Part shown: positions 3,832 through 60,025 of the stretch, piece after piece
Numbering within the stretch: the first letter of the stretch is position 1
How the letters are laid out: every line of letters begins with the position of its first letter
Sequence record: MW845758.1
Length of the DNA stretch: 64,000 nucleotides
Direction: 5' to 3' (one strand)
Translations under genes and position numbers: made by a program
The notes under the pieces: generated by a model
Seen by the model: the letters and a program-made list of their open reading frames with translations, nothing else
Database searches by the model: none
Told to the model about the DNA's origin: nothing

Positions 3832-3850
3832 CTACGAACGGATTTTATTT

Positions 3851-5533: not shown

Positions 5534-5540
5534 ACTAAGG

Positions 5541-5566
5541 GCCACCTCCGGGTGGCTTTCTTTTTT
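5541..5566 (+). terminator. Intrinsic terminator
   Basis: GCCACC-TCCG-GGTGGC followed by a T tract. Confidence 0.75.
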
Positions 5567-5584
5567 CTCGTAAGGATAAATATC

Positions 5585-6568
5585 ATGCCAACTATTGAAA
5601 ACGCTTTCCCGGACTTTACCCTCGTCTCTCCTGCGAACAATCTGCTGGAAGGGGCTACCTACGAAACCCTCGCCAAGATTGAACCGGATTTGTGGGAAGT
5701 CAAACGTGCTTTCCATAACGGCAAAGAAGCCGTCGCCATTTATTACCGTGGTGCGCTGTTCCATCATCAGTACAATTTCGAACAGAGCGGTGTGAAGAAT
5801 ATGCCTCTCAGTGCGATTATCTACGCACAGGCGTACGTCATTACTGAGGGCAAAGAAGAACTGCTGACCCGTAACGACTTGGAAGGTCTGAACGTATTGG
5901 CCCGTAAAGTCATCCTGTTGTTGGAACTCAACGATGAAGGCCGTGCTCAGGCGTGGGCGGATCAGAAATTCAGCGACCCTGTTTTAGCAGCCGATGAGTT
6001 ATACCACGGCTTTATGGGTTTCATGATGGACTCACTGCGCAAGTGGAAATCCAGCAACGGGGTGATTATCACACAGCGCATGCTGTGGGGCATCCAGTCG
6101 ACCGGCTTCACCGTCACTGCGAAGCATGAAGATGACAAGATTGAATTCAACCGCAAGTACGAAATGTTGAGTGATTTCACCACCCCTATGCAGCAAGTAG
6201 TAAAAGACTTTACTACGCTGCTACTGACCATGGGTTGGATTAGCGCCAGTCCAGAACCGATTGACATCGAACGTCTGCGCAAAGAACGTCTTGCTCGTAA
6301 CTTTGCACACAACCATCAACACAACGTTGAGCAGAATCTTAAGCACAGCACACTGACTTCTGATTGCCGTACCGCAGAGTCCTTCGCTGACCTCCCGCCA
6401 GCAATGCAGGAACTGGCGGGAGACACCGAGTTGGGCGGTATGGCACAACTGCAATCCCGCCGTGACATTTTATCTGCGCTGGGTGAGTTAGAAGCCCGTA
6501 CTGATATCTCAGATAGCGAGCGTAATGAAAAGATGGCTGCGCTGTACGACCAGCTTGAGCGTATGTAA
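5585..6568 (+). CDS. Hypothetical protein (about 327 aa)
   Basis: TAAGGA RBS before ATG 5585; the upstream TTG start lies inside a terminator. Confidence 0.75.
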   Translation: MPTIENAFPDFTLVSPANNLLEGATYETLAKIEPDLWEVKRAFHNGKEAVAIYYRGALFHHQYNFEQSGVKNMPLSAIIYAQAYVITEGKEELLTRNDLEGLNVLARKVILLLELNDEGRAQAWADQKFSDPVLAADELYHGFMGFMMDSLRKWKSSNGVIITQRMLWGIQSTGFTVTAKHEDDKIEFNRKYEMLSDFTTPMQQVVKDFTTLLLTMGWISASPEPIDIERLRKERLARNFAHNHQHNVEQNLKHSTLTSDCRTAESFADLPPAMQELAGDTELGGMAQLQSRRDILSALGELEARTDISDSERNEKMAALYDQLERM

Positions 6569-6572
6569 TCCG

Positions 6573-6607
6573 CCCCCTACTCAACCGAGTAGGGGTTCTT
6601 TCTTTTT
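6573..6607 (+). terminator. Intrinsic terminator
   Basis: CCCCTACT-CAACCG-AGTAGGGG followed by a T tract. Confidence 0.75.
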
Positions 6608-6622
6608 GTAAGGAGTTACCCA

Positions 6623-7303
6623 ATGACTAAAGTTTTCGATTTCTGGCACGCGTTTAATGCTAAGTATTCTTTCTCTGAAGAAGACAACCTGTTTGTCTCG
6701 TATAACGAGCAATACGAGCTGGGTATGCGCAAGCTCGACAACGGGTGGGGTGTCATCGGCATCGACTTTGAAGGCACTATGGTGCACGAGCAACTTTTCC
6801 CGATGCATGACAAAGACCCTCAGTCCTACCTACGTGCCGCCCTAGAGGCCACTGCGCATGCCATGTTAACGATACTGACCGGGGTGTGGTCTGCGAAAGA
6901 CCGCGACTTATACCTGCGTGATTTGTTCACACTGGTTCGCCAAATCAACAACAACCTCAAAGACCCGGAAGTTGAAGAACTCCTGCGCCGCATTAAAGAG
7001 CCACATGATGGCGTTGACCACGCCCCAGACGGCATCTACTGGAACGCCAGTAAGTTTATCCGTAAAGTGTACCCGGATGAAATGCCAACCGTCCAATACA
7101 CCAACGGTGAGCTGGTCTTTATCGCTCGCCCGCACTACGACGGCCATCAGGTAGAGTTCCTCGCAATGGCTTTCCAAGGCGATGTCAGCCTTCAGGCAAG
7201 AAAGATGATTGGCTGGACAATGGAATACGAAGAAACTCTTGACGAGTTGCTGACGCAGTTTAAAGGCAACGTGGATAAACTCGGCTGGAAGCTTTTCTCT
7301 TAG
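6623..7303 (+). CDS. Hypothetical protein (226 aa)
   Basis: TGTAAGGAG RBS. Confidence 0.8.
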   Translation: MTKVFDFWHAFNAKYSFSEEDNLFVSYNEQYELGMRKLDNGWGVIGIDFEGTMVHEQLFPMHDKDPQSYLRAALEATAHAMLTILTGVWSAKDRDLYLRDLFTLVRQINNNLKDPEVEELLRRIKEPHDGVDHAPDGIYWNASKFIRKVYPDEMPTVQYTNGELVFIARPHYDGHQVEFLAMAFQGDVSLQARKMIGWTMEYEETLDELLTQFKGNVDKLGWKLFS

Positions 7304-7308
7304 TTGTC

Positions 7309-7339
7309 AGGTACCTCTTCGGAGGTACCTTTTTTATTT
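7309..7339 (+). terminator. Intrinsic terminator
   Basis: AGGTACCTC-TTCG-GAGGTACCT followed by a T tract. Confidence 0.85.
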
Positions 7340-7354
7340 GTTTTCTTTCACTGC

Positions 7355-7388
7355 AAAGAAAATAAAAGGCGTCCTCCCGAAGGAGGAC
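7355..7388 (-). terminator. Intrinsic terminator on the minus strand, closing sRNA unit C
   Basis: Minus strand reads GTCCTCC-TTCG-GGAGGAC-GCCTTTTATTTTCTTT. Confidence 0.8.
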
Positions 7389-7413
7389 ATTTCGCAATGC
7401 ACAGGAGTACATT

Positions 7414-7563
7414 ATGCAAACCTTTAAAGAGCACCTTCAACGGGCGCTCACCCAGCAACAATCCTATCAACAGCGTGTGCAGGCGTTACAGCGCCAACCT
7501 ACGCAACGTAATGGCAACGTATTAAAAGGATTAGGGGGTGATATCATCTTCAACAAGAGCTAG
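7414..7563 (+). CDS. Small Gln-rich ORF (49 aa), not in the ORF track
   Basis: AGGAG RBS 6 nt before ATG; MQTFKEHLQRALTQQQSYQQRVQALQRQPTQRNGNVLKGLGGDIIFNKS. No obvious plus-strand promoter. Confidence 0.5.
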   Translation: MQTFKEHLQRALTQQQSYQQRVQALQRQPTQRNGNVLKGLGGDIIFNKS

Positions 7564-7655
7564 CTGAAAGCTTAATCCTAAGTGGGTGTTGACGCACCCA
7601 CTTAGACTACCAGCATAGTAAGAACCGCCGCTGTTATTTTTTTTTGTTCCGGCAC

Positions 7656-7797
7656 AAAAAAAGTGAAAGGTTGTTCCCCCCGAAGAGAGAACACTCCACC
7701 CCAGGAAAGAGCTGGACGACCTTTCGAAAGTAAAACAACACATGGTTAGCGCAGAGTGGGATTACAAGGGGGATGGGTTGACGACGCATAATCCCAC
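7656..7797 (-). ncRNA. Candidate late small RNA, unit B (about 142 nt), with a 5' hairpin and a 3' three-way junction
   Basis: TTTTAC-N15-TATG; 11-bp 5' stem starting at +1; UUCG-capped stem with GU pairs on this strand only; ends in U7. Confidence 0.6.
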
Positions 7798-7817
7798 ATA
7801 GAGACTCACCGACCTGT

Positions 7818-7853
7818 AAAAAAATAAAAAGACCCCCACCATCCGGTAGGGGT
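7818..7853 (-). terminator. Intrinsic terminator for the helicase and sRNA unit A
   Basis: Minus strand reads ACCCCTACC-GGAT-GGTGGGGGT-CTTTTTATTTTTTT. Confidence 0.8.
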
Positions 7854-7907
7854 GAACTAGAACAAGACAGTGTCGATTTTCAGTTGTGTAGAGCGGTATT
7901 GCCCTAC
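7818..7907 (-). ncRNA. Candidate small RNA, unit A (about 90 nt), or processed helicase 3' UTR
   Basis: TATG at 7910-7907; 5' stem GUAGGGC/GCUCUAC starts at the G; ends at the terminator. Confidence 0.4.
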
Positions 7908-7965
7908 ATAGAAAACGAGGGCGGCACATCTAAACCACCCGAGAGCCGAAGCTCCCGGGCAGCTG

Positions 7966-9534
7966 TTAAAACAAATCGTCGCCCATGCCACCGGTGAAGT
8001 GGTTGATTGAAGGCGCGGAAATGGTTTCTTCTTTATCGCAATCCCAAGGTAGGATGCCAACGTCATGGAAGGGCAGCACTGTGTAGTGATGCTTCTCAGG
8101 CGTATCAATAATTGTGCGGTGTTTGCCTCGCTGCACTTCGAGGTAGCTGTGGCCGTTGACCACACGCTTGTTAAAGAACATTTCGCCATCCGCCTCGTTG
8201 TCAAGGCTGGTACAGTTGTCGTAGAGTCCACGACCTGGGAGGCTCTTACAGAAGCCTACTGGGTCAAGCGTACGCGCTTGTTTACCCGCGGGTGATATTT
8301 GATGCGGTGCAAGGGCAAAGCCTCGCTGACGGACCACCATGATGTTACGGACGATGCGGTAGATTTCTTTTATGTCTGTACCTGCAATACCGTTACCGTG
8401 GCCTGCCTTGTTAATCGTGCCGAAGTAATCGCCACGCAACCCAACAACATGGAATCCGCGAGTTTTCAAATCGGAAATCAGGTCATTGAGGTAATGAACT
8501 TTAAAGTCGGTGTTGGTGTGTTTCTGGAACACGTAATCCCAACCCTTCTGACGAATCTTACCACAGAGGTAATCCGCCATTGCTTGCGTATGAGCTTTCT
8601 GCTCTTCCGGTGTCAGATTCTCCGGAGCAGTCATCTGAGGCGCAACGCCTTCGAAGTGTCCGTGAATCGCTTGGTAACCGTAAGCGATGTTTACATCCAA
8701 TTCATTCTCAAACGACAAATCCAGAATACACGGTTGCAGTGTACCCTTCACATCGACCATGACTTCTTCAGGTGTGTTGAAGATAGGCAGGCTTAACGAC
8801 GTCAACAAACTGAACAGCGATTTACAGTTAAACGGTAGGGCCGGCATTAACCACAGTTCTTCGGTTAAACCTTTGTTACAACCGAGCATGGCATTAATAC
8901 CTTTCCATCCGGTTTGTAATCCGTTACCTGCTGCTTTCTTGTTGATACTGTCAAACACTTTCACAAATGGTGCGGTGTTATTTGTCACGAGCTCATTGAC
9001 AAGACTTGGAATCTTATTATGAGAACGTTCACCGAACGTGGAGAGTGAGTCACGTAGTTCGTTAACAGCGGTCGACAGGTCGATACGTTGTTCGGTGCCA
9101 TTCAAAGCACCGAGGGCGCGACCCAGCTTTTGTTTTAGTTGGACACCCTGCAACGCATGACGCATTTGATAATACTGTTGGCTCACGACTTTTTGCAGAT
9201 ACTGCAAACGAGCCTCAGGGTCGGTTGGTGTGTCTTCGTCCTCTTCCATGTTTTTAACAATGGAATCATATAGGGGACGGGTTTGCGTCGTCGCCAACCT
9301 GACACGCTTCATGACCTGTGAATGGTCGTACTCGACACCATGGTCAACAATCGATGTGATGATGTCTTTGATCTCGGCTAAGGCGGAACGTTCGTCGCCT
9401 TCTTCGATGAACTCAGGCAGCCTAGCTTCCTGCAGCACTTTTCTTATGACGTCGTGGTCTTTGACCGGGTCACTAAGAAGGCTCTCCGCGTGTAGCGTAG
9501 CTAAGGCTGTAATCAACATCATTTTACTATTCAT
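7966..9534 (-). CDS. dnaB: DnaB-like replicative helicase (phiKZ gp118-type)
   Basis: GLQTGWKGINAMLG, degenerate Walker A ALPFNCKS, Walker B RGDYF, HQIS, DNEAD and RGKHR motifs; divergent from the capsid operon as in phiKZ-like phages. Confidence 0.85.
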   Translation of the reverse strand: MNSKMMLITALATLHAESLLSDPVKDHDVIRKVLQEARLPEFIEEGDERSALAEIKDIITSIVDHGVEYDHSQVMKRVRLATTQTRPLYDSIVKNMEEDEDTPTDPEARLQYLQKVVSQQYYQMRHALQGVQLKQKLGRALGALNGTEQRIDLSTAVNELRDSLSTFGERSHNKIPSLVNELVTNNTAPFVKVFDSINKKAAGNGLQTGWKGINAMLGCNKGLTEELWLMPALPFNCKSLFSLLTSLSLPIFNTPEEVMVDVKGTLQPCILDLSFENELDVNIAYGYQAIHGHFEGVAPQMTAPENLTPEEQKAHTQAMADYLCGKIRQKGWDYVFQKHTNTDFKVHYLNDLISDLKTRGFHVVGLRGDYFGTINKAGHGNGIAGTDIKEIYRIVRNIMVVRQRGFALAPHQISPAGKQARTLDPVGFCKSLPGRGLYDNCTSLDNEADGEMFFNKRVVNGHSYLEVQRGKHRTIIDTPEKHHYTVLPFHDVGILPWDCDKEETISAPSINHFTGGMGDDLF

Positions 9535-9547
9535 GGAGCATCCTTCA

Positions 9548-10081
9548 ATGCGAATTCGTTTTAACCCATCGTGGGTGGATCAACCTAACATAGATAATGC
9601 GTCGGCCAGTAAAAAGTTAGAAGAGCTACAAGCGGAGTTCTTTAACTGGTTATATGACTGCCCACAGGGTTTCAGTTCCAAGCTTTTACCGGAACAATCC
9701 CCCGTTGCATTGTTTAAATCGTTTATGGCGGTTGACCCCGGCCCCATCAAATATTATGACCAAGTGCTGAACTTGGTTGAAAGAGGTACGGATTCCTCGC
9801 TGGCCGATTTATATGGGCTAACGTGCTCCGGGTCGTTGCGTTGGGTGTTTTCCCAGTGTAATGATATGATTGTCGCTAAATTGTCTGAAGCGGAACCCCA
9901 CCACTCACATGTGAGTTTTCCGATTGACGACGACAAGGCAGCAAAAAAGACGTTCTGCGCAGAACTTTTTAAATATGTGCGTACCAAGACTCGCGTCGTG
10001 GATGATTCGTTCAGCACTTCTACGCAGTTTGCTACACATCAGGTGCTGACGCAAATTTACGCATGTCATTTATTCAACTAG
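9548..10081 (+). CDS. Conserved hypothetical protein upstream of the major capsid gene
   Basis: GGAG RBS before ATG 9548; the track's extension to 9230 overlaps the helicase and is unlikely. Confidence 0.7.
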   Translation: MRIRFNPSWVDQPNIDNASASKKLEELQAEFFNWLYDCPQGFSSKLLPEQSPVALFKSFMAVDPGPIKYYDQVLNLVERGTDSSLADLYGLTCSGSLRWVFSQCNDMIVAKLSEAEPHHSHVSFPIDDDKAAKKTFCAELFKYVRTKTRVVDDSFSTSTQFATHQVLTQIYACHLFN

Positions 10082-19117: not shown

Positions 19118-19522
19118 ATGAAAAACGAATTGATCAATCTGGGTGAGTTGCAACTTCACGATGAAATGAACGGCGGTTCCCGTACCGCAATGATTCCAGA
19201 CGAAGTCCTTCTTAAAACGCTGGCGATCGACACCACGGGCGATACTGAGAAAGTACGACGTTTCGTCGAAGAGCTTGCTGAAGAAGGTAAGCTGATGACT
19301 GAAGGTGATGTGACCGCACTCGTTGAAAAAGCGCGTGATGCATTACAACAACCTACAGGCCGCATGACTATCGATAGCCTCGGTCACCTCGATACACGCC
19401 CCGCCAGTGTCTACTTAACCCCTTCACCGACGTACAAAGAACGTCGTGCTGAGAAAGCCCGTAAGAAACGCGAAGCCAAGTTCAAGCGTAGCCAATATGC
19501 GCGCGAGATGGGCATGCTGTGA
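19118..19522 (+). CDS. Hypothetical protein with a basic C-terminal helix
   Basis: TGTAAGGAGTAAT RBS. Confidence 0.8.
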   Translation: MKNELINLGELQLHDEMNGGSRTAMIPDEVLLKTLAIDTTGDTEKVRRFVEELAEEGKLMTEGDVTALVEKARDALQQPTGRMTIDSLGHLDTRPASVYLTPSPTYKERRAEKARKKREAKFKRSQYAREMGML

Positions 19523-19848
19523 ACGGGTTGTCGGTTCCTGAGCTAATAGGCGCTTGTGTGGTTGCGTGGATAGTCTCGGCAATCCTCAACGCTATCTTCC
19601 AACTTGCTTTCATCTTCTACGAACTTAACTTTCGCATCAAACGCGGACGCACACTCGCTACCGCGTTGCGTAAGCAGTGTGTTGAAGGACTGCATAACCG
19701 TCCTTGGGATTGTTGGGATGAGTGGGAAGTTGAGGAAGACCGGTACAATTCAGAAGTCGCTCGCGCATTCCGCCGTATAGGTGAGCTCACCGGCATGGAT
19801 TGGGCTCAAGAACAATTTCGATGGTTTAGAAGTAAGGGAGGTTTATAG
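19519..19848 (+). CDS. Small membrane protein
   Basis: GTGA overlap with the previous stop; N-terminal hydrophobic helix. Confidence 0.7.
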   Translation: MNGLSVPELIGACVVAWIVSAILNAIFQLAFIFYELNFRIKRGRTLATALRKQCVEGLHNRPWDCWDEWEVEEDRYNSEVARAFRRIGELTGMDWAQEQFRWFRSKGGL

Positions 19849-19979
19849 TGGACCCGGTAGCTAAATGGTTTTTACTCGGTTGGTGTGGATTGGTCGTCGT
19901 CGCAGGCTGCTTCTGGATCTGGCAGGAGTGTGGTTGGTGGAAACGCATGGACAGACTCATGAAGGGTGATAAGAAATGA
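19848..19979 (+). CDS. Small membrane peptide (43 aa), not in the ORF track
   Basis: GGAGG RBS, GTG start, MDPVAKWFLLGWCGLVVVAGCFWIWQECGWWKRMDRLMKGDKK; overlaps both neighbours. Confidence 0.65.
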   Translation: MDPVAKWFLLGWCGLVVVAGCFWIWQECGWWKRMDRLMKGDKK

Positions 19980-29420: not shown

Positions 29421-29896
29421 TAGTGATGTCGGTTGAGATTGATAAGATCTCACCTGAGGTCTATCCCGAACTAACGACGTTTCTGGAAGACGCGAATAGC
29501 GTACGTAAAGAACCTGTTAAAGTCGTGATGGCCGTTCAGGACGATATCGTGCACGGGATGGCGATTTACGAACCGGGGCACTTGGTGTACCTGTATGTCG
29601 TACCGTCTTCTCGTCGCAGCGGTGTAGCCACGTTCCTTGTTAAACACGTAGCTGCGCAATCGCCGTTTAAGAAATTAACGGCAATCGTCAATCCCGACGC
29701 GGTTGATGCCCAGTGTTTCTTTCTCCAGAAAGGTTGGCGGATAGAGAACTGGTACACCGGCCTCGATAATAAGCGGTATTTCCGTATGACGACTATGGCG
29801 ACACAACCGGCTCAGTCACCGCCGGTTGAGGTTGGGTTAGCGCGTTTTGCGAAAACAGTTCCAATCTTTATCTCGGTGGGTAATAAAATAATATAA
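29417..29896 (+). CDS. GNAT family acetyltransferase
   Basis: LYVVPSSRRSGVATFLV (motif A) and AQCFFLQKGW (motif B). Confidence 0.8.
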   Translation: MIVMSVEIDKISPEVYPELTTFLEDANSVRKEPVKVVMAVQDDIVHGMAIYEPGHLVYLYVVPSSRRSGVATFLVKHVAAQSPFKKLTAIVNPDAVDAQCFFLQKGWRIENWYTGLDNKRYFRMTTMATQPAQSPPVEVGLARFAKTVPIFISVGNKII

Positions 29897-29917
29897 ATAC
29901 TCACGGGAATTACTACA

Positions 29918-30406
29918 ATGCAGCGTGTCGTTTACGAAACACGTCAACAGTGTGAAGCGGGTGTCGAGTCTATTCGTGTTTGTGAACAAGTGGCCAACTG
30001 TGATCTTGACCTTCAACGGTCGACCGTCCGTGGGCAGCCTGTCAAAATACTGACTCACCACCCAGTACATTTTGGATTACCTAAAACTACACCGGCAATA
30101 CGGCCTTGTGCGAAAGTGGACTACCAACTCCTGAAACGACAACTCGAACGCCATTACCGTCGCTCTTACTGGAAACAGTTAGTGATGATGATGGTCGAGG
30201 AACTCATCAAGGATTTGGAATGGGAAGTGGTGTTGGGGAACGCCGGCTTCAAGACTAAGTCTTTCACTTACCACTGGGAACGTTTCAAAAAACTGTACCT
30301 TAAGTCGATACCAAGCTGTCGTCGGTCTTGGCCGACGCGGAACATGCTTCCTCGACTTGAGCAACAGCCCTGGCTTCTCGCTTATCTAGAAGAGGATAAA
30401 AATTGA
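29918..30406 (+). CDS. Hypothetical protein
   Basis: ORF within the operon. Confidence 0.65.
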   Translation: MQRVVYETRQQCEAGVESIRVCEQVANCDLDLQRSTVRGQPVKILTHHPVHFGLPKTTPAIRPCAKVDYQLLKRQLERHYRRSYWKQLVMMMVEELIKDLEWEVVLGNAGFKTKSFTYHWERFKKLYLKSIPSCRRSWPTRNMLPRLEQQPWLLAYLEEDKN

Positions 30407-30798
30407 TGCGTTCAGTATTGACCCTATTGATGCTCTTGGTGTTATCTCAGACTGCACACGCGGAATTTAGCCCAAGTGAAATGCTGGGATACCAGCCCAA
30501 TAGTCCCGACGAACCAAAAGTAAAATTCGAATCAACCGATCGTGCTCGCACGGTATCGGAAGGCGGGGACTTTGCTATTGTGAATTTCGGAAGGACGCAG
30601 ACCTGTCCGGGCGGTGGATTTTATCTGGTGAATACCAAACGTAAAATCTACCAGTTCATCGATGCAGGCAGTTGTTATGCGAATATCCGTGCAGAACTCA
30701 GTGCACCGGCAACGGGATTCAAAACCGTGGCCACACAGATTCTCACGTTTTATGTCGGCGATACCATTATAGCCCGCTACCCGCTGTACGGGTATTGA
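30403..30798 (+). CDS. Secreted or periplasmic protein with a signal peptide
   Basis: MRSVLTLLMLLVLSQTAHA-EF looks like an SPase I signal; two Cys residues. Confidence 0.7.
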   Translation: MMRSVLTLLMLLVLSQTAHAEFSPSEMLGYQPNSPDEPKVKFESTDRARTVSEGGDFAIVNFGRTQTCPGGGFYLVNTKRKIYQFIDAGSCYANIRAELSAPATGFKTVATQILTFYVGDTIIARYPLYGY

Positions 30799-30803
30799 CC
30801 GCT

Positions 30804-30840
30804 GCCCTGCTTACTTCGGTAGGCAGGGTGCCTTTCTTTT
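30804..30840 (+). terminator. Intrinsic terminator
   Basis: CCCTGCTTAC-TTCG-GTAGGCAGGG followed by a T tract. Confidence 0.75.
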
Positions 30841-30852
30841 CGGAGACGGCCT

Positions 30853-31938
30853 ATGTCCTTCATCATAGACCGCACCCGAACGCACCAACAGTCGTTATTG
30901 GATTTGGTGAATTTTGCCAACGCCGATACCGTCGAAACGCTTTTAACGGTAGCCAATACTGGTATCACAAAGCGTGGGGAACTCTACCCGGGTGTATACG
31001 GGTTGCGGCTGTCTAACCTGTCGGCGGAAGACGACACGGTGGATGTGCAGCACACCAAGATAGAACTCGGAGATATCTTGTTATTCAGTCAGGATGACTT
31101 GAAGTGGTTCAACCCGTTAAACATTCCTTCGTTAACCAACGTGTGGGACAACGCAGCATTGCAGATGGTTGAGGGAGCAATCGCGAAGCTTGGCTTTACC
31201 ATCAGCAAAATATTCAATCCACCGAATGGTTGCTTTGTCACGTACAACGCTGATGAACAGGCATGGTTCATCACCTTCCGTTGCGACTCGTTTGTATTTG
31301 AAGAGTTATTCTTATATCGCCTGCCGCACTACTTTGGCGAGTACGTAACGGTAAAAGATTTACTCGGGTTCCAGTTTAACCCGATAGGCAGTACAGCCGA
31401 ACCAATACCTGACGCTTACCCCGTGGACTTCACCAAGGATACATGGACGCTCTTGGCCGGTCTGATTAACTTTGAAAACAACTTCGGGTACGTAACCGAG
31501 AACGTTGTATGGGATAAATTGAAAGTCCTGAGTGGTAGCACAGTCACCGGGGCCAATACCAGCATTGACTTGGACGTCTTGGGTGAGCCGTCAGAGGTAG
31601 TGGGTGATTACGTCACCTTTACCTACAAACGTATGAACTTGGCGACAGTGTGGCCATCTCCGCCACGGTTAACGGTTACTGATGTGGGACTCGACCGGAA
31701 TACGGAAACCATCGACATCCCTACATTGATTGCATCGCTGCAAGACCGGTTCTTGTTTAACGAAACCGACTATTCATTTACCTTCGAGTATTTGAAAAAG
31801 CGGATTACCGTCAAGGCGTTAGACACCAACGTGGCGTACTTAGGCACGTTACAGTTCACAGTGGATTTCGGTCTCGGACTGGCCGATTTAGTGAAGGTAA
31901 CGCGTTTGAACGGATTCGAAAAGGGCAAGTTCTATTAG
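30853..31938 (+). CDS. Virion structural protein of the tail-fibre-family repeat type (two modules)
   Basis: LLDLVNFAN and LLAGLINFEN module starts; YKRMNLA; DTNVAYLGTLQF. Confidence 0.65.
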   Translation: MSFIIDRTRTHQQSLLDLVNFANADTVETLLTVANTGITKRGELYPGVYGLRLSNLSAEDDTVDVQHTKIELGDILLFSQDDLKWFNPLNIPSLTNVWDNAALQMVEGAIAKLGFTISKIFNPPNGCFVTYNADEQAWFITFRCDSFVFEELFLYRLPHYFGEYVTVKDLLGFQFNPIGSTAEPIPDAYPVDFTKDTWTLLAGLINFENNFGYVTENVVWDKLKVLSGSTVTGANTSIDLDVLGEPSEVVGDYVTFTYKRMNLATVWPSPPRLTVTDVGLDRNTETIDIPTLIASLQDRFLFNETDYSFTFEYLKKRITVKALDTNVAYLGTLQFTVDFGLGLADLVKVTRLNGFEKGKFY

Positions 31939-31946
31939 CTCTGGGG

Positions 31947-31985
31947 TACCCTCTCTTCGGAGAGGGTAAAACCTCTTATTTTTTG
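31947..31985 (+). terminator. Intrinsic terminator
   Basis: TACCCTCTC-TTCG-GAGAGGGTA followed by a T-rich tract. Confidence 0.75.
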
Positions 31986-32019
31986 CGTAACGGGGGCTTG
32001 GTATAGGAGGAATACAAAC

Positions 32020-32586
32020 ATGAAAAAATATAGACTGGCTATTATCGGCTCACGGGAGACCGATGAGGCAACCATGAAAGAGATGTACGATACCGCACTG
32101 CTGGGTATCACGTTATTGCTGGAGCGGGGTTATGAAGTCGAAGTGGACAGCGGTGGTTGTTGGAAAGGCCCTGACCAGATTCAATTCACTCTTGCCCGTG
32201 TATTTGCAACCGATGAACGGGTGGCATTTGTTTGCTACCTTCCTGACGAGAAAAAGATGTGGTTACGTACCAAACATCCTAACGTCGAGTTCCGTGCTAT
32301 CCCTCGTACGTCCCTTTACGACGACATTGTTCGTAGTCTACACCCAGCGCCAGATTACTTAGACGATTGGTCTTATGCACTCCATGGACGTAATTTGAAT
32401 ATCATTATGGGTGACGAATTACGCACGCCGGCGGATGCGGTCTATTATTCTGCAGCGCTGGACAAGCGAGGCAACCCAAAAGGCGGTACGGCAATGGGCG
32501 TGGCGTATGCCAAGTCGGTCAACGTGCCTACTTATCATCACGGTCTACAGGCGCAAGAGTGGCTGGATTCCGTGCGTTTATTATGA
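32020..32586 (+). CDS. SLOG superfamily (DprA/Smf-like) nucleotide-binding protein
   Basis: LAIIGSRET, SGGCWKGPD, HGRN and GGTAMGVAYAKSVNVP are characteristic SLOG motifs. Confidence 0.75.
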   Translation: MKKYRLAIIGSRETDEATMKEMYDTALLGITLLLERGYEVEVDSGGCWKGPDQIQFTLARVFATDERVAFVCYLPDEKKMWLRTKHPNVEFRAIPRTSLYDDIVRSLHPAPDYLDDWSYALHGRNLNIIMGDELRTPADAVYYSAALDKRGNPKGGTAMGVAYAKSVNVPTYHHGLQAQEWLDSVRLL

Positions 32587-32602
32587 TTCCTCTGAGGCAC
32601 AC

Positions 32603-32866
32603 ATGCAAAAAACATCTTTGTGGCAGCGTCTTATGGACGCGTTTAATCCTCCACCACCGAAAGCCATTCCTATCCCACAGCCTGTACTCTGGCAGGGTAC
32701 GGAGCAGGAGTTCTTTAATTATCTGGACACGAGAGAATTTATCTCTGTGCCGGACGATGCAGAGAAACCCCGGACGATTCTGTACGTGGATGGTAAGACG
32801 CATGAAAACTTTGCGATGGCGGTGCGCTGGCCGAACCGTTATTACTACTATCTGATAGAAACCTAA
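32603..32866 (+). CDS. Small hypothetical protein
   Basis: GAGG RBS before ATG 32603. Confidence 0.65.
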   Translation: MQKTSLWQRLMDAFNPPPPKAIPIPQPVLWQGTEQEFFNYLDTREFISVPDDAEKPRTILYVDGKTHENFAMAVRWPNRYYYYLIET

Positions 32867-32881
32867 AACAGGGAGCCGCGT

Positions 32882-33877
32882 ATGTCGCTCGAACAAGACT
32901 TTGAGATTCTGTGTGACGACTTCGACAGACTCGTAGCGTTAGAATCTCTCGGGGTGCGTCCCGACAACGCGGCTGTCCGCGCCATTGCCAAACGCTGGCA
33001 TTTAGAACAACGTGGTTTTGTTGCTGGCGAATCCCGCGATAAGAAACCTGCCAAAACATCTAATCTGCTGGCTCAGGTCTTTAATGACTGGGCCGGGTAT
33101 TTCGGCACTCGCTATGTCGAGTGGACGAAGAAACAAGATGGTCAAGCTGCAGCTTTAGAAAAGCACGCAGAACAGTTGGACGCGAAGCTTGGTCAGGTGG
33201 AAACACTGAACAGCCACACCGTGCCTAGCGGTAGCTGGACATCCAAGGTCTGCTTTGAAGACCTGCCGAATTTCAAAGAATGTATCAAGCTTTCGAATGC
33301 AGCTGATGGGATGGATGCGGTGGTGAAGCAATACACCGTGATTACCCGTCAAATTGTACTGTCACCGGTTATCGACCGTCGTAAGCTGGAAGACGGTGAG
33401 CTGACTAAAATCGGTTACAGTTCGAACGCTGCTATTCACCGTGCATCCGGCATCTTGGGTAAGTTCGGGGAAGATGACGTACAGGCTCGCCCACTGGCGG
33501 GTAATGTTATTGTCGTCACTCGCAACCAAGGTGATAAAGGTAAAGTGCAATACGCCATCGCCCATGGTGGGGATTTCAAAAAGGTTATCCCCTCGTTGGA
33601 GAAATCCGAATGTGTCTCTGCTGTGAAGGCCATTCGAAAGATTGCTGCTTCACTTCGTAAACGCGGTGCAAAGAACGGCTTGTTCGGATACAAAGGTATC
33701 TACGAAGAAGTCGAGAAGATGAAGGCAGAACTGCTGAAGCTCGAAGGGGCTGATCTTAAAAAAGCTACCCTGCGTTACAAAAACGCACTGGAGTTAGAGA
33801 ACGCTTTCACCCACGCCTTAGACCGTGTTGGTGATGGTCTGGTTAACTGGGTGACGGCAAGTATCAAAGCCGGTTAA
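32882..33877 (+). CDS. Putative processed internal head protein, paralog A
   Basis: Acidic propeptide with SLE, ALE-S and AGE-S prohead-protease motifs, followed by a Lys-rich mature region. Confidence 0.65.
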   Translation: MSLEQDFEILCDDFDRLVALESLGVRPDNAAVRAIAKRWHLEQRGFVAGESRDKKPAKTSNLLAQVFNDWAGYFGTRYVEWTKKQDGQAAALEKHAEQLDAKLGQVETLNSHTVPSGSWTSKVCFEDLPNFKECIKLSNAADGMDAVVKQYTVITRQIVLSPVIDRRKLEDGELTKIGYSSNAAIHRASGILGKFGEDDVQARPLAGNVIVVTRNQGDKGKVQYAIAHGGDFKKVIPSLEKSECVSAVKAIRKIAASLRKRGAKNGLFGYKGIYEEVEKMKAELLKLEGADLKKATLRYKNALELENAFTHALDRVGDGLVNWVTASIKAG

Positions 33878-33886
33878 GGGGCACGT

Positions 33887-35011
33887 ATGTCATTGGAACA
33901 AGATTTAGAGATTCTCAACGATGACTACGATAGACTTGTGGCGTTGGAGTCTCTCGGTATGCCACCGGATTATCCGGCGATTGCAGCTATCCGACAACGT
34001 TGGTGTCTGGATGATGTCGAACCGCCATTCGTTGCAGGTGAGTCTACCCCGATGGAACGCGCGCAGGCCGTACACGATGCAGAACGCTTTGGTCGTGTCA
34101 GTACCGTCTACGCAGGAAAGGCTGCCCGTAGTCTGGGCCGAGGTGCTCATGCGGTCGGACGTGCAGGAAGGCCACTGGTAGAGAAAGGAGCCAGAGCGGT
34201 TGGTCGGGCCTCTCACCAGCTGGCTGCTCGCTTTGTTGACTTCGCAGATGAAATCGCCAAAGACACCACCAAGAAAATCAAGCACGCCACAAACAAAGCC
34301 ACGCTGCTGGAAAACCAGATGCACAAGCTGCGTAAGTTGCTGGCGGCAACCAGTGAGTTGTCAGGTGGTAAAGTGGAAACCGGTAAGTGGACATCGAAAG
34401 TGTGCATGGAAGACAAAGTCGATGTCGATAAGATTATCGAGTTCTGTGGGCACAGTCGTGTTATCGAAGCACGTATCAATGACTTCACCGTAAAGGTTCG
34501 TGGTGTGCTGAAAAGCAACAAAGAGCTTGACGGTAACGAAGTCGAGCGTATTGGTAAGTCCACGAACTGGGCCATCAAACGTGCTGCCGGGTTGGTCGGT
34601 ATTGCCTCTCCTTTAAAAGAGGTGAAAGCGACGTGCTTTGGCGGTAACGTTATCGTGGTAGAGAACATCAAAGGGAACGTCACATACGCTGTTGCCCGCG
34701 ATGGCGATTATGGTGACACCATTGAGGCGCTCTCGCGCAATAACTGTGACCGTGCACTGGAAGCGGTTGGGAATGCGATTGACACTCTGAAAGGAATGGG
34801 CGTCAAGCGTAAGGTTGGTGGGTACACGGCTATCGACGAAGATGCTAATGAACTTAAAGCAAATTTGAAGAACGTGGTACTCAAAGACCTGCGTCGTGTG
34901 ACCGGCTACTACAAATCGTCTATGGCGTTGAACGATGCGTTTGCCACGGCGATGGTGCGTTCAGCTGAAGGGCTGCTGGAATACGTCCGTCTCTCTATCA
35001 AGGGGGACTGA
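33887..35011 (+). CDS. Putative processed internal head protein, paralog B
   Basis: N-terminus nearly identical to 32882 (MSLEQD.EIL.DD.DRLVALESLG); shared WTSKVC.ED and GNVIVV motifs. Confidence 0.65.
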   Translation: MSLEQDLEILNDDYDRLVALESLGMPPDYPAIAAIRQRWCLDDVEPPFVAGESTPMERAQAVHDAERFGRVSTVYAGKAARSLGRGAHAVGRAGRPLVEKGARAVGRASHQLAARFVDFADEIAKDTTKKIKHATNKATLLENQMHKLRKLLAATSELSGGKVETGKWTSKVCMEDKVDVDKIIEFCGHSRVIEARINDFTVKVRGVLKSNKELDGNEVERIGKSTNWAIKRAAGLVGIASPLKEVKATCFGGNVIVVENIKGNVTYAVARDGDYGDTIEALSRNNCDRALEAVGNAIDTLKGMGVKRKVGGYTAIDEDANELKANLKNVVLKDLRRVTGYYKSSMALNDAFATAMVRSAEGLLEYVRLSIKGD

Positions 35012-59821: not shown

Positions 59822-59831
59822 ATAAAGATAA

Positions 59832-59864
59832 GGTAGCCCTAGTGGCTACCCTCTTTTATTTTTT
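59832..59864 (+). terminator. Intrinsic terminator
   Basis: GGTAGCC-CTAGT-GGCTACC followed by a T tract. Confidence 0.7.
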
Positions 59865-60025
59865 GGCCCTACTCCCGAAAGGGGGTGTGTATGTAGCTGC
59901 ACTTTATTTTTTGGCATCAACCCCTGCCAACCCCTCCTTCTGATTAGAGGGAGGGGTACTTTATTTCGTTGCTTATGGCACACTGCCACTACTCTCCACA
60001 CCAGCCAAAACAATAGGAGTCCAGC

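Follow-up and report, generated by a model that had tools for sequence, protein, structure and literature searches.

The stretch examined here spans positions 7355-7965 of a 64,000-nt window, which corresponds (100% identity) to bases 62001-126000 of the 251,480-bp genome of Erwinia phage pEa_SNUABM_11 (pEa_11; MW845758.1), a phiKZ-related jumbo phage of the genus Wellingtonvirus. The phage's major capsid protein matches Pfam PhiKZ_MCP (E = 1e-218), and two PHROG matches to the RNA polymerase beta subunit were obtained at record positions 29757-31973 (E = 4e-251) and 31970-34069 (E = 1e-227). The locus lies between the plus-strand small genes 79-88 and a minus-strand gene for a DnaB-like helicase. 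Within 7303-7966 the record annotates a 49-aa plus-strand gene at 7414-7563 and nothing on the minus strand, in keeping with an earlier suggestion, made in a preliminary description of this DNA, that gene callers would miss a tandem array of three late RNA genes there. We find three minus-strand units at these positions and judge, at about an even chance, that they would be one small RNA (sRNA) candidate (unit 1), one orphan cassette (unit 2) and one cis-antisense RNA (unit 3), not a uniform late array. Genomes used for comparison included Kwan, Wellington, the IMG/VR contig L005 and L014, and similarity searches covered 50,697 phage records. The features of the locus, in the order in which the helicase strand is read, are as follows (window positions).

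7966-9534, minus strand: DnaB-like replicative helicase gene pEaSNUABM11_00089 (Pfam PF20307 divDNAB, E = 8e-127; annotated in Kwan as DnaB-like helicase).
7919-7959, minus strand: hairpins A (7959-7938) and A2 (7940-7919), then UCGUUUUC, immediately 3' of the helicase stop codon; kept in Kwan, Wellington and L014.
7907-7910, minus strand: TATG of unit 1, putative start at G 7907; the four letters do not vary among pEa_11, Kwan, Wellington and L005.
7888-7907, minus strand: 5' hairpin of unit 1, 7 bp with a 6-nt loop, first pair at the G; covariation in four genomes.
7855-7887, minus strand: core of unit 1, mostly unpaired, AACUGAAAAUCGA ... UGUCUUGUUC; invariant alignment columns.
7818-7853, minus strand: T1, intrinsic terminator, 9-bp GC-rich hairpin (7853-7832) and U5AU7 (U-tract 7831-7818); clean match.
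7797-7830, minus strand: promoter candidate of unit 2, T-run, TAC (7818-7816), 15-nt spacer (N15) and TATG (7800-7797); clean match to the class defined below.
7656-7797, minus strand: body of unit 2, with a 10-bp 5' stem (7797-7756), a branched stem (7725-7665) and U7 (7662-7656), by folding.
7633-7646, minus strand: A9 run CAAAAAAAAATAAC, a T-run on the plus strand; kept in nearly all relatives.
7614-7617, minus strand: TATG of unit 3, putative start at G 7614; invariant in 12 of 12 genomes with the small gene while the flanks vary.
7563-7614, minus strand: long 5' hairpin of unit 3, outer stem and inner hairpin B (7605-7578); compensatory pairs.
7414-7563, plus strand: gene 88, conserved 49-aa protein, phrog_18219 (E = 1e-14), with an AGGAG ribosome-binding site (RBS) at 7403-7407.
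7355-7388, minus strand: T3, intrinsic terminator on the helicase strand, hairpin (7388-7371) and CCUUUUAUUUUCUUU (U-tract 7370-7355), just past the gene 88 start; clean match.
7309-7348, plus strand: terminator of gene 87 (terminator scan), back-to-back with T3 through an A/T palindrome.

A minus-strand TATG was confirmed at 7910-7907, 7800-7797 and 7617-7614, and a fourth, missing from the preliminary description, was found at 7790-7787. The 402-nt gap at 7564-7965 contains four TATGs on the minus strand, compared to 0.97 in shuffled sequences (P ~ 0.007), and none on the plus strand. Minimum free energy folding from the G opened each unit with a stem at that G (7907-7888, 7797-7756 and 7614-7563), so that all three layouts of TATG, stem at the G and U-tract were recovered where they had been described. 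Units 1 and 2 folded better on the minus strand (unit 1: -30.6 kcal/mol, z = -4.0, versus -22.3, z = -2.3, on the plus strand; unit 2: -42.8, z = -2.4, versus -32.1, z = -0.2), in line with the claim that G-U pairs in several stems work on that strand only; this did not extend to unit 3, which folded strongly on both strands (z = -4.9 and -4.2), although its outer stem still depends, in most genomes, on the helicase strand. Terminator-like sites were over-represented in a scan of 6500-8500 (8 found, 2.1 expected). Searching units 1-3 against the whole phage genome returned no paralogues and no repeat shared between units, only chance matches of 9-12 nt and T-tracts. The Rfam search that had been proposed gave no family match (Rfam 15 over the region, best scores of 15-20 bits versus thresholds of 42-95, E >= 1.6), and ARAGORN detected no tRNA or tmRNA there.

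The region had also been described as having no credible minus-strand open reading frame (ORF), and none was found. It is not devoid of genes, since the plus strand carries the conserved and annotated gene 88. It is extremely improbable that the minus strand codes for small proteins: a 51-aa ORF (7789-7634) with hydrophobic stretches and a 70-aa ORF (7743-7531) do exist, but neither has a usable RBS or a PHROG match, tblastn against the phage records gave no homologue of the 51-aa ORF, both cross predicted terminators and hairpin B (the 51-aa ORF running 22 nt past U7), and the region is absent from relatives.

The use of TATG as a start motif was borrowed from phiKZ, where it has been established by experiment that transcription starts at the G of TATG; late promoters of the phiKZ non-virion RNA polymerase (nvRNAP) consist of TATG with the start at the G, and middle promoters carry AAanTTACc at about -24 (Yakunina et al. 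2015, PMC4666361; Chen et al. 2026, PMC12809450). In pEa_11, four independent observations indicate that the motif matters as well. The window contains 203 TATGs versus 381 expected, and shuffling of synonymous codons in 88 genes showed depletion within genes both in sense (131 versus 213.8, z = -9.1) and in antisense (43 versus 91.9, z = -6.5), with no depletion of the control tetramers TACG, CGTA, TGTG, AATG, CATG and TATT. The same shuffles also indicated that TATA is depleted (z = -4.4) and TATC enriched (z = +6.9). Intergenic TATGs in front of genes share a context in which a terminator U-tract is followed by TAC and, about 15 nt later, by TATG. Genome-wide, TATG was located exactly 15 nt downstream of 7 of the 47 T-rich+TAC sites (0.066 expected, ~100-fold) and was the commonest tetramer at that distance.

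We defined this promoter class by a T-rich run, TAC at -21 to -19, a spacer of 15 (13-17) nt and TATG. T-run+TAC-N13-17-TATG occurs at 11 sites in the 251-kb genome, 9 of which follow a terminator and lie 23-77 nt before an annotated gene; the genes behind the class have mostly unknown functions by PHROG and include one SbcC-like protein. The helicase gene has a candidate of its own:

9589-9616, minus strand: helicase promoter candidate, CTTTTTAC-N16-TATG, with G 9589 located 55 nt before the ATG and inside the divergent gene 90.

The helicase upstream element, T-run+(T/A)AC+N15/16+TATG, is invariant in 17 related genomes from several genera. On the other strand, 13 genomes share an unchanged TTTTCTTATGAC ~100 nt before the gene 90/capsid pair, for which coding constraint could account. 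Because TATG is depleted in genes, enriched at N15 and conserved in the helicase element, and because the phage encodes RNA polymerase beta-like subunits, we counted it as a signal here: it looks like a functional start-site motif in this phage family, a supported candidate for which the start at the G is predicted. The helicase gene and the gene 90/capsid pair are divergent with start codons 13 nt apart, and their candidate TATG promoters (9589-9616, minus strand; 9445-9448, plus strand) each lie inside the coding sequence of the opposite gene and are invariant across genera.

Unit 3 (7614 to ~7355) has the widest distribution, with structural conservation in 12 genomes. Gene 88 homologues are annotated in 17 other records of Erwinia, Salmonella, Escherichia and Proteus phages; the protein is polar, basic and Q-rich with an invariant KGLGGDIIFNK tail, and its DNA changes at third positions. 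Since gene 88 has an RBS, phrog_18219 membership, homologues and this conserved tail, unit 3 would be antisense to a real gene, which it overlaps completely (150 of the 260 nt of the unit). TATG 7614 and T3 at 7355 bracket gene 88 on the opposite strand, and at the sequence level the same bracket is found in 12 genomes with the small gene, which belong to three genera (Wellington-, Machina- and Seoulvirus) and carry 11 distinct hairpin sequences. In all 12 the helicase strand reads A-run, TATG, long hairpin reaching to the stop codon of the gene, antisense of the gene, then, just past its start codon, hairpin and CCUUUUAUUUUCUUU. The context of this TATG is AAC-N15-TATG after the A-run, a variant that is also present in the helicase promoters of relatives.

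The inner stem of the long hairpin is 98% paired with compensatory changes at 7 of 10 pairs. When folded from +1, the outer stem starts at the G in 11 of the 11 distinct sequences; it contains two or three G-U pairs, differs between clades in pair-preserving ways and in most genomes does not form on the gene strand. At the far end, T3 has an identical architecture with differing stem sequences in the 12 genomes, and its U-G / C-G alternation is readable on the helicase strand only. A covariance model of the hairpin retrieved the 12 syntenic copies and no others, and the outer stem was aligned no better with it. Both pEa_11 and L005 keep the unit 3 TATG, T3 and an outer stem that differs between them by compensatory changes, despite the upstream T1; this persistence of a module that T1 insulates from the helicase speaks for an own start of unit 3. 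So does the joint loss of gene 88 and unit 3 in Kwan, Wellington and L014. These comparisons give good support to an RNA that crosses the small gene on the helicase strand; that this RNA starts at the TATG is less certain. A type I toxin-antitoxin pair formed by gene 88 and unit 3 was considered and rejected, the protein being hydrophilic with no hydrophobic segment. SPN3US-type phages (L009 4697-5102; L028, SPLA5c) have two tandem phrog_18219 paralogues, and the TATG with outer-stem hairpin is present only at the helicase-proximal copy.

Unit 1 (7907 to ~7818) is carried by pEa_11, Kwan, Wellington and L005 and is absent from L014. Homology between the carriers ends at the TATG, upstream of which three unrelated contexts are found. 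Three stem sequences in the four genomes give a 5' hairpin of one and the same geometry (7-8 bp, 6-nt loop); 4 of 8 pairs are changed on both sides with pairing kept, in a set of four genomes only. The unit 1 terminator T1 covaries across the same four, and a core, AAC.UGAAAAUCGA, is invariant. Further homologues were sought by an IMG/VR pattern scan, which returned Wellington only, and by a single metagenome scan with 103 chance hits, none of them genuine, so that the covariation is limited to few lineages. With units 1 and 3 taken together, the covariation supports the view that a conserved, strand-specific RNA structure lies between TATG and an intrinsic terminator on the minus strand.

In Wellington, a 155-aa plus-strand gene, gp86 (L023 1030-1494), separates unit 1 from the helicase, whose hairpins lead into a U-rich stop signal; unit 1 of that phage therefore cannot be a helicase 3' untranslated region (UTR) and would need its own start. 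A plus-strand TATG is present ~20 nt before the gp86 start. In pEa_11 and Kwan, T1 probably terminates the helicase mRNA in addition to unit 1.

The position of unit 1 upstream of gp86 also bears on whether the conserved elements act on the plus strand, with the unit 1 core serving as promoter or 5' UTR (Wellington gp86 being the example) and the gene 88 mRNA having its 3' end at hairpin B and its 5' stabiliser in the T3 hairpin. Hairpin B lies just past the gene 88 stop codon and is followed by a T9 run, the inner stem of pEa_SNUABM_6 is perfect on the plus strand only, and unit 3 folds about equally well there. We nevertheless regard such a plus-strand role as very unlikely. A probable early (virion polymerase) promoter motif, AGATAGATATTATCnnnGTGA, is AT-rich and found at ~28 sites genome-wide, nearly all on the plus strand and upstream of genes. 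A position weight matrix of this motif, applied to six phages, scored <5 throughout the region versus 20-33 at genuine sites, and the unit 1 core, tried as a plus-strand early promoter, scored <0 and was rejected. With 20-30 nt between hairpin B and the T9 run, the arrangement departs from a canonical terminator. The helicase strand alone allows the outer stem and the T3 U-G pair, and it also bears the T3 U-tract; for units 1 and 2, plus-strand folding is markedly poorer. Within the window, AGATAGATATTATCnnnGTGA sites are located at 3850, 12493, 14601, 37784, 39112 and 49152.

Unit 2 (7797 to ~7656) is the sole unit that belongs to the T-run+TAC-N15-TATG class, and its TATG is the only clear class member without an ORF behind it; the U-tract of T1 serves also as the T-run of this promoter candidate. 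The unit is probably transcribed, as far as the sequence can indicate. Its 3' end is less regular than T1 or T3: T2, formed by the branched stem at 7725-7665 and U7 at 7662-7656, matches a terminator only through the branched stem or with a 10-nt spacer. Alignment with L005 and Kwan shows an extra ~167 nt in pEa_11 where T1 is otherwise followed by the A-run; this insertion, unit 2, is unique to pEa_11, and no similar DNA was found among the phage records. A decayed second copy of gene 88 (compare SPN3US) was considered as its origin, and was not credible by eye from the plus-strand frame or DNA similarity.

An insertion of this kind is what would be expected if units 1 and 2 were leftover regulatory cassettes that have lost their cargo, terminator-promoter joints at which small genes are gained and lost, perhaps transcribed into RNAs without function. 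Indels at this locus are bounded by T-tracts and terminators (the unit 2 insertion; gp86 in Wellington), gene 88 is lost in Kwan, Wellington and L014 and duplicated in SPN3US, and unit 2 occurs in one phage only. Set against this are the invariant 13-nt core of unit 1 and its compensatory stem changes, in phages whose helicases are only ~80% identical at the protein level; the core and the stems together argue for selection on the RNA. Unit 3 is left unaddressed by such a history. As an account of the whole locus we rate it unlikely.

The stacked terminators suggest another explanation, namely that the region insulates a convergent junction, with tandem fail-safe terminators and 3' stabilisers for the helicase and gene 87/88 mRNAs, unused TATGs, and minus-strand RNA that is 3' UTR and read-through. 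The genes here are convergent with back-to-back terminators, in relatives that lack the small gene one bidirectional hairpin stands between A-run and T-run, helicase read-through to T3 is plausible in Machina- and Seoulvirus, and other intergenic regions stack terminator-like hairpins. One of these, a 204-nt intergenic region at 59822-60025 of the window, has three such hairpins and two plus-strand TATGs (G at 59893 and 59977), one of which has a U-tract only ~10 nt downstream; it can be taken as a control showing that a TATG beside terminators is not always a meaningful unit. Were insulation the only role, T2 and T3 would be superfluous after a terminator as strong as T1. Chance is a very improbable source of the unit 2 promoter match, and in a genome that avoids TATG the motif is invariant at the 5' edge of conserved structure (unit 1 in 4 genomes, unit 3 in 12). 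In Wellington, moreover, an opposite-strand gene and a U-rich stop signal stand between the helicase and unit 1. On balance we consider this explanation somewhat unlikely.

The reading of an sRNA candidate, an orphan cassette and a cis-antisense RNA must itself be set against a number of observations that weigh on the other side. A stem of at least 7 bp starts at the G of 6.5% of TATG sites genome-wide versus 4.9% of other G sites; such a stem is weak evidence by itself because it is common by chance, and 'stem starts at G of TATG' was rejected as a genome-wide rule, being barely enriched. The mRNA promoters of the T-run+TAC-N15-TATG class have no stem starting at the G. For unit 1, TGT occupies the place of the TAC element, and the support comes from four genomes with about three independent hairpin versions. 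Neither unit 1 nor unit 2 has a complementary target of at least 13 nt elsewhere in the phage genome. In unit 2 the distance from the stem of T2 to U7 is 2-10 nt depending on the fold, and the unit has no homologue; purified phiKZ nvRNAP gave no transcription in vitro from middle promoters (PMC4666361). For unit 3, the boundary of the outer stem is exact in only some genomes when 15-nt flanks are included, and a C-A mismatch on the helicase strand of the pEa_SNUABM_6 inner stem corresponds to a G-U pair on the gene strand. Machina- and Seoulvirus genomes have no helicase U-tract terminator before the small gene, so that read-through could supply antisense RNA there without a TATG promoter. A literature search returned no transcriptome for any SPN3US-like phage.

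Under the favoured division into sRNA candidate, orphan cassette and cis-antisense RNA, the phage polymerase would start at the G of TATG, the +1 stem would shield the 5' end and an intrinsic terminator would fix the 3' end. Unit 1 would then be a ~90-nt non-coding RNA gene conserved in Wellingtonvirus, opening with a 7-bp stem and ending at T1, with its conserved unpaired core (AACUGAAAAUCGA...) as the likely interaction surface. Unit 2 would be a 142-nt lineage-specific cassette inserted after T1, in which a helicase-class promoter has nothing behind it but structured RNA and a weaker terminator; the RNA may have a function, or gene turnover at a recombination-prone joint may have left the promoter cassette stranded. 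Unit 3 would be a 260-nt cis-antisense RNA running from the conserved TATG across gene 88 to T3, and its perfect pairing with the 150-nt gene 88 message could silence or destabilise that message once helicase-strand transcription is active. Transcript ends (5' and 3'), timing and functions of the three units are predictions drawn from the motifs, enrichment, conservation and covariation observed.

The units are thus probably minus-strand RNA-level elements, as the preliminary description proposed, and that description was partly right. Its uniform, dedicated cluster is not what was found: the promoter contexts are unlike, and both the degree of conservation and the relation to coding sequence vary, unit 3 being antisense and unit 2 confined to pEa_11. 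Structural conservation in relatives was seen for unit 1 (four genomes) and unit 3 (12 genomes) and not for unit 2, which is absent elsewhere. The RNAs are not clearly 'late', the unit 2 promoter being of the helicase type (T-run+TAC-N15-TATG) that resembles phiKZ 'middle' promoters, and nothing points to a structural or packaging role. A bolder version, to which we assign a low probability and which we find decidedly doubtful, is that SPN3US-like phages have a class of stable non-coding RNAs that the phage polymerase makes from minimal TATG starts with a +1 stem, including a three-genus antisense RNA that switches off a small early protein when the replication genes turn on, with the +1 stem as part of the promoter. 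If true, the promoter role of the +1 stem would be relevant to the downstream determinant of phiKZ late promoters, which is so far unexplained.

Bacterial sRNAs of the DapZ type are derived from 3' UTRs, have their own internal promoter and share the terminator with the mRNA. Unit 1 of pEa_11 and Kwan resembles these: it stands directly behind a gene, would share T1, and has an unpaired conserved stretch and a long U-tail. In Wellington, by contrast, it stands apart from the helicase. As a lead only, a 2010 study by Arbiol et al. is said to have described promoter-stem-loop cassettes that flank variable genes in T4-type phages, which would likewise be modules of promoter and terminator hairpin marking sites of small-gene turnover; the motifs differ, and no sequence repeat is shared between units 1-3. 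To our knowledge, the promoters of phiKZ-related phages beyond phiKZ, 201phi2-1 and AR9 are essentially unmapped.

Compared to phiKZ late promoters, units 1 and 3 likewise have TATG at the predicted start and no upstream conservation, and compared to the middle promoters, unit 2 and the helicase have a similarly placed T-run+TAC centred near -23. Both phages encode RNA polymerase beta-like subunits. The upstream element of pEa_11 differs in being T-rich+TAC and not AAanTTACc, genus and host are different, and the starts are predicted. ONT-cappable-seq has detected 11 sRNAs in 201phi2-1 (PMC11512511) and non-coding RNAs together with 4 antisense RNAs in phiKZ (PMC10914365). Those are also short units in chimallivirus-type phages, in which a start leads directly to a terminator and which are intergenic or opposite genes; they were seen as RNA, whereas units 1-3 are predicted, and there is no homology in sequence or position. 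Antisense RNAs against early genes are also on record for virulent phages such as PAK_P3, as cited in PMC10914365. Unit 3 is similar in lying opposite an early-type operon gene with perfect pairing predicted, and differs in that its target is a single 49-codon gene and not a block of early genes. Because similar short units and antisense RNAs have been shown experimentally in 201phi2-1 and phiKZ (PMC11512511, PMC10914365), the kind is already known; the units described here would be nothing categorically new but predicted members of it in another phage group. A literature search returned no description of a conserved small early-operon gene paired with an antisense unit beside a helicase.

Some observations concern the neighbourhood. 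In the plus-strand run of small genes (5534-5584, 6569-6622 and 7304-7413), each gene is followed by a hairpin with a T-tract and then immediately by the next RBS, GTAAGGAG; gene 88 and other distal small genes seem to rely for expression on terminator read-through, and no recognisable promoter precedes gene 88. Directly after the helicase 3' hairpin, a second conserved motif, G(G)CAGTTATGYGTCCTGCC, is found in Seoul-, Machina- and related viruses (L007-L013, L018, L019, L003, L004 and L024-L028). In phages without the small gene this motif faces a bidirectional terminator ~50 nt away, so that a ~70-nt RNA is possible; the Wellingtonvirus version of the site is TTAGATG, in which the TATG is lost. 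Elsewhere in the window, the annotated gene 99 (50 aa, 19543-19695, minus strand) overlaps a 109-aa plus-strand ORF (19519-19848) with a GTG start and a hydrophobic N-terminus. The 280-nt 'intergenic' gap that follows contains a 43-aa plus-strand ORF (19848-19979) that has AAGGGAGG as its RBS and includes a membrane-like segment, and the annotation across 19519-19979 may be incorrect.

Middle and late promoters of phiKZ-related phages have been said to elude bioinformatic prediction (PMC7598289). If the present results hold, T-run+TAC-N15-TATG would be a predictable promoter class for the Erwinia/Salmonella phage group, with the helicase promoter as its conserved anchor. Annotation of non-coding genes would be useful in such phages, which are under development against fire blight and Salmonella. 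Likewise if the results hold, phrog_18219 and its antisense RNA would represent a simple form of RNA-level temporal control in nucleus-forming phages, in which transcription and translation are physically separated.

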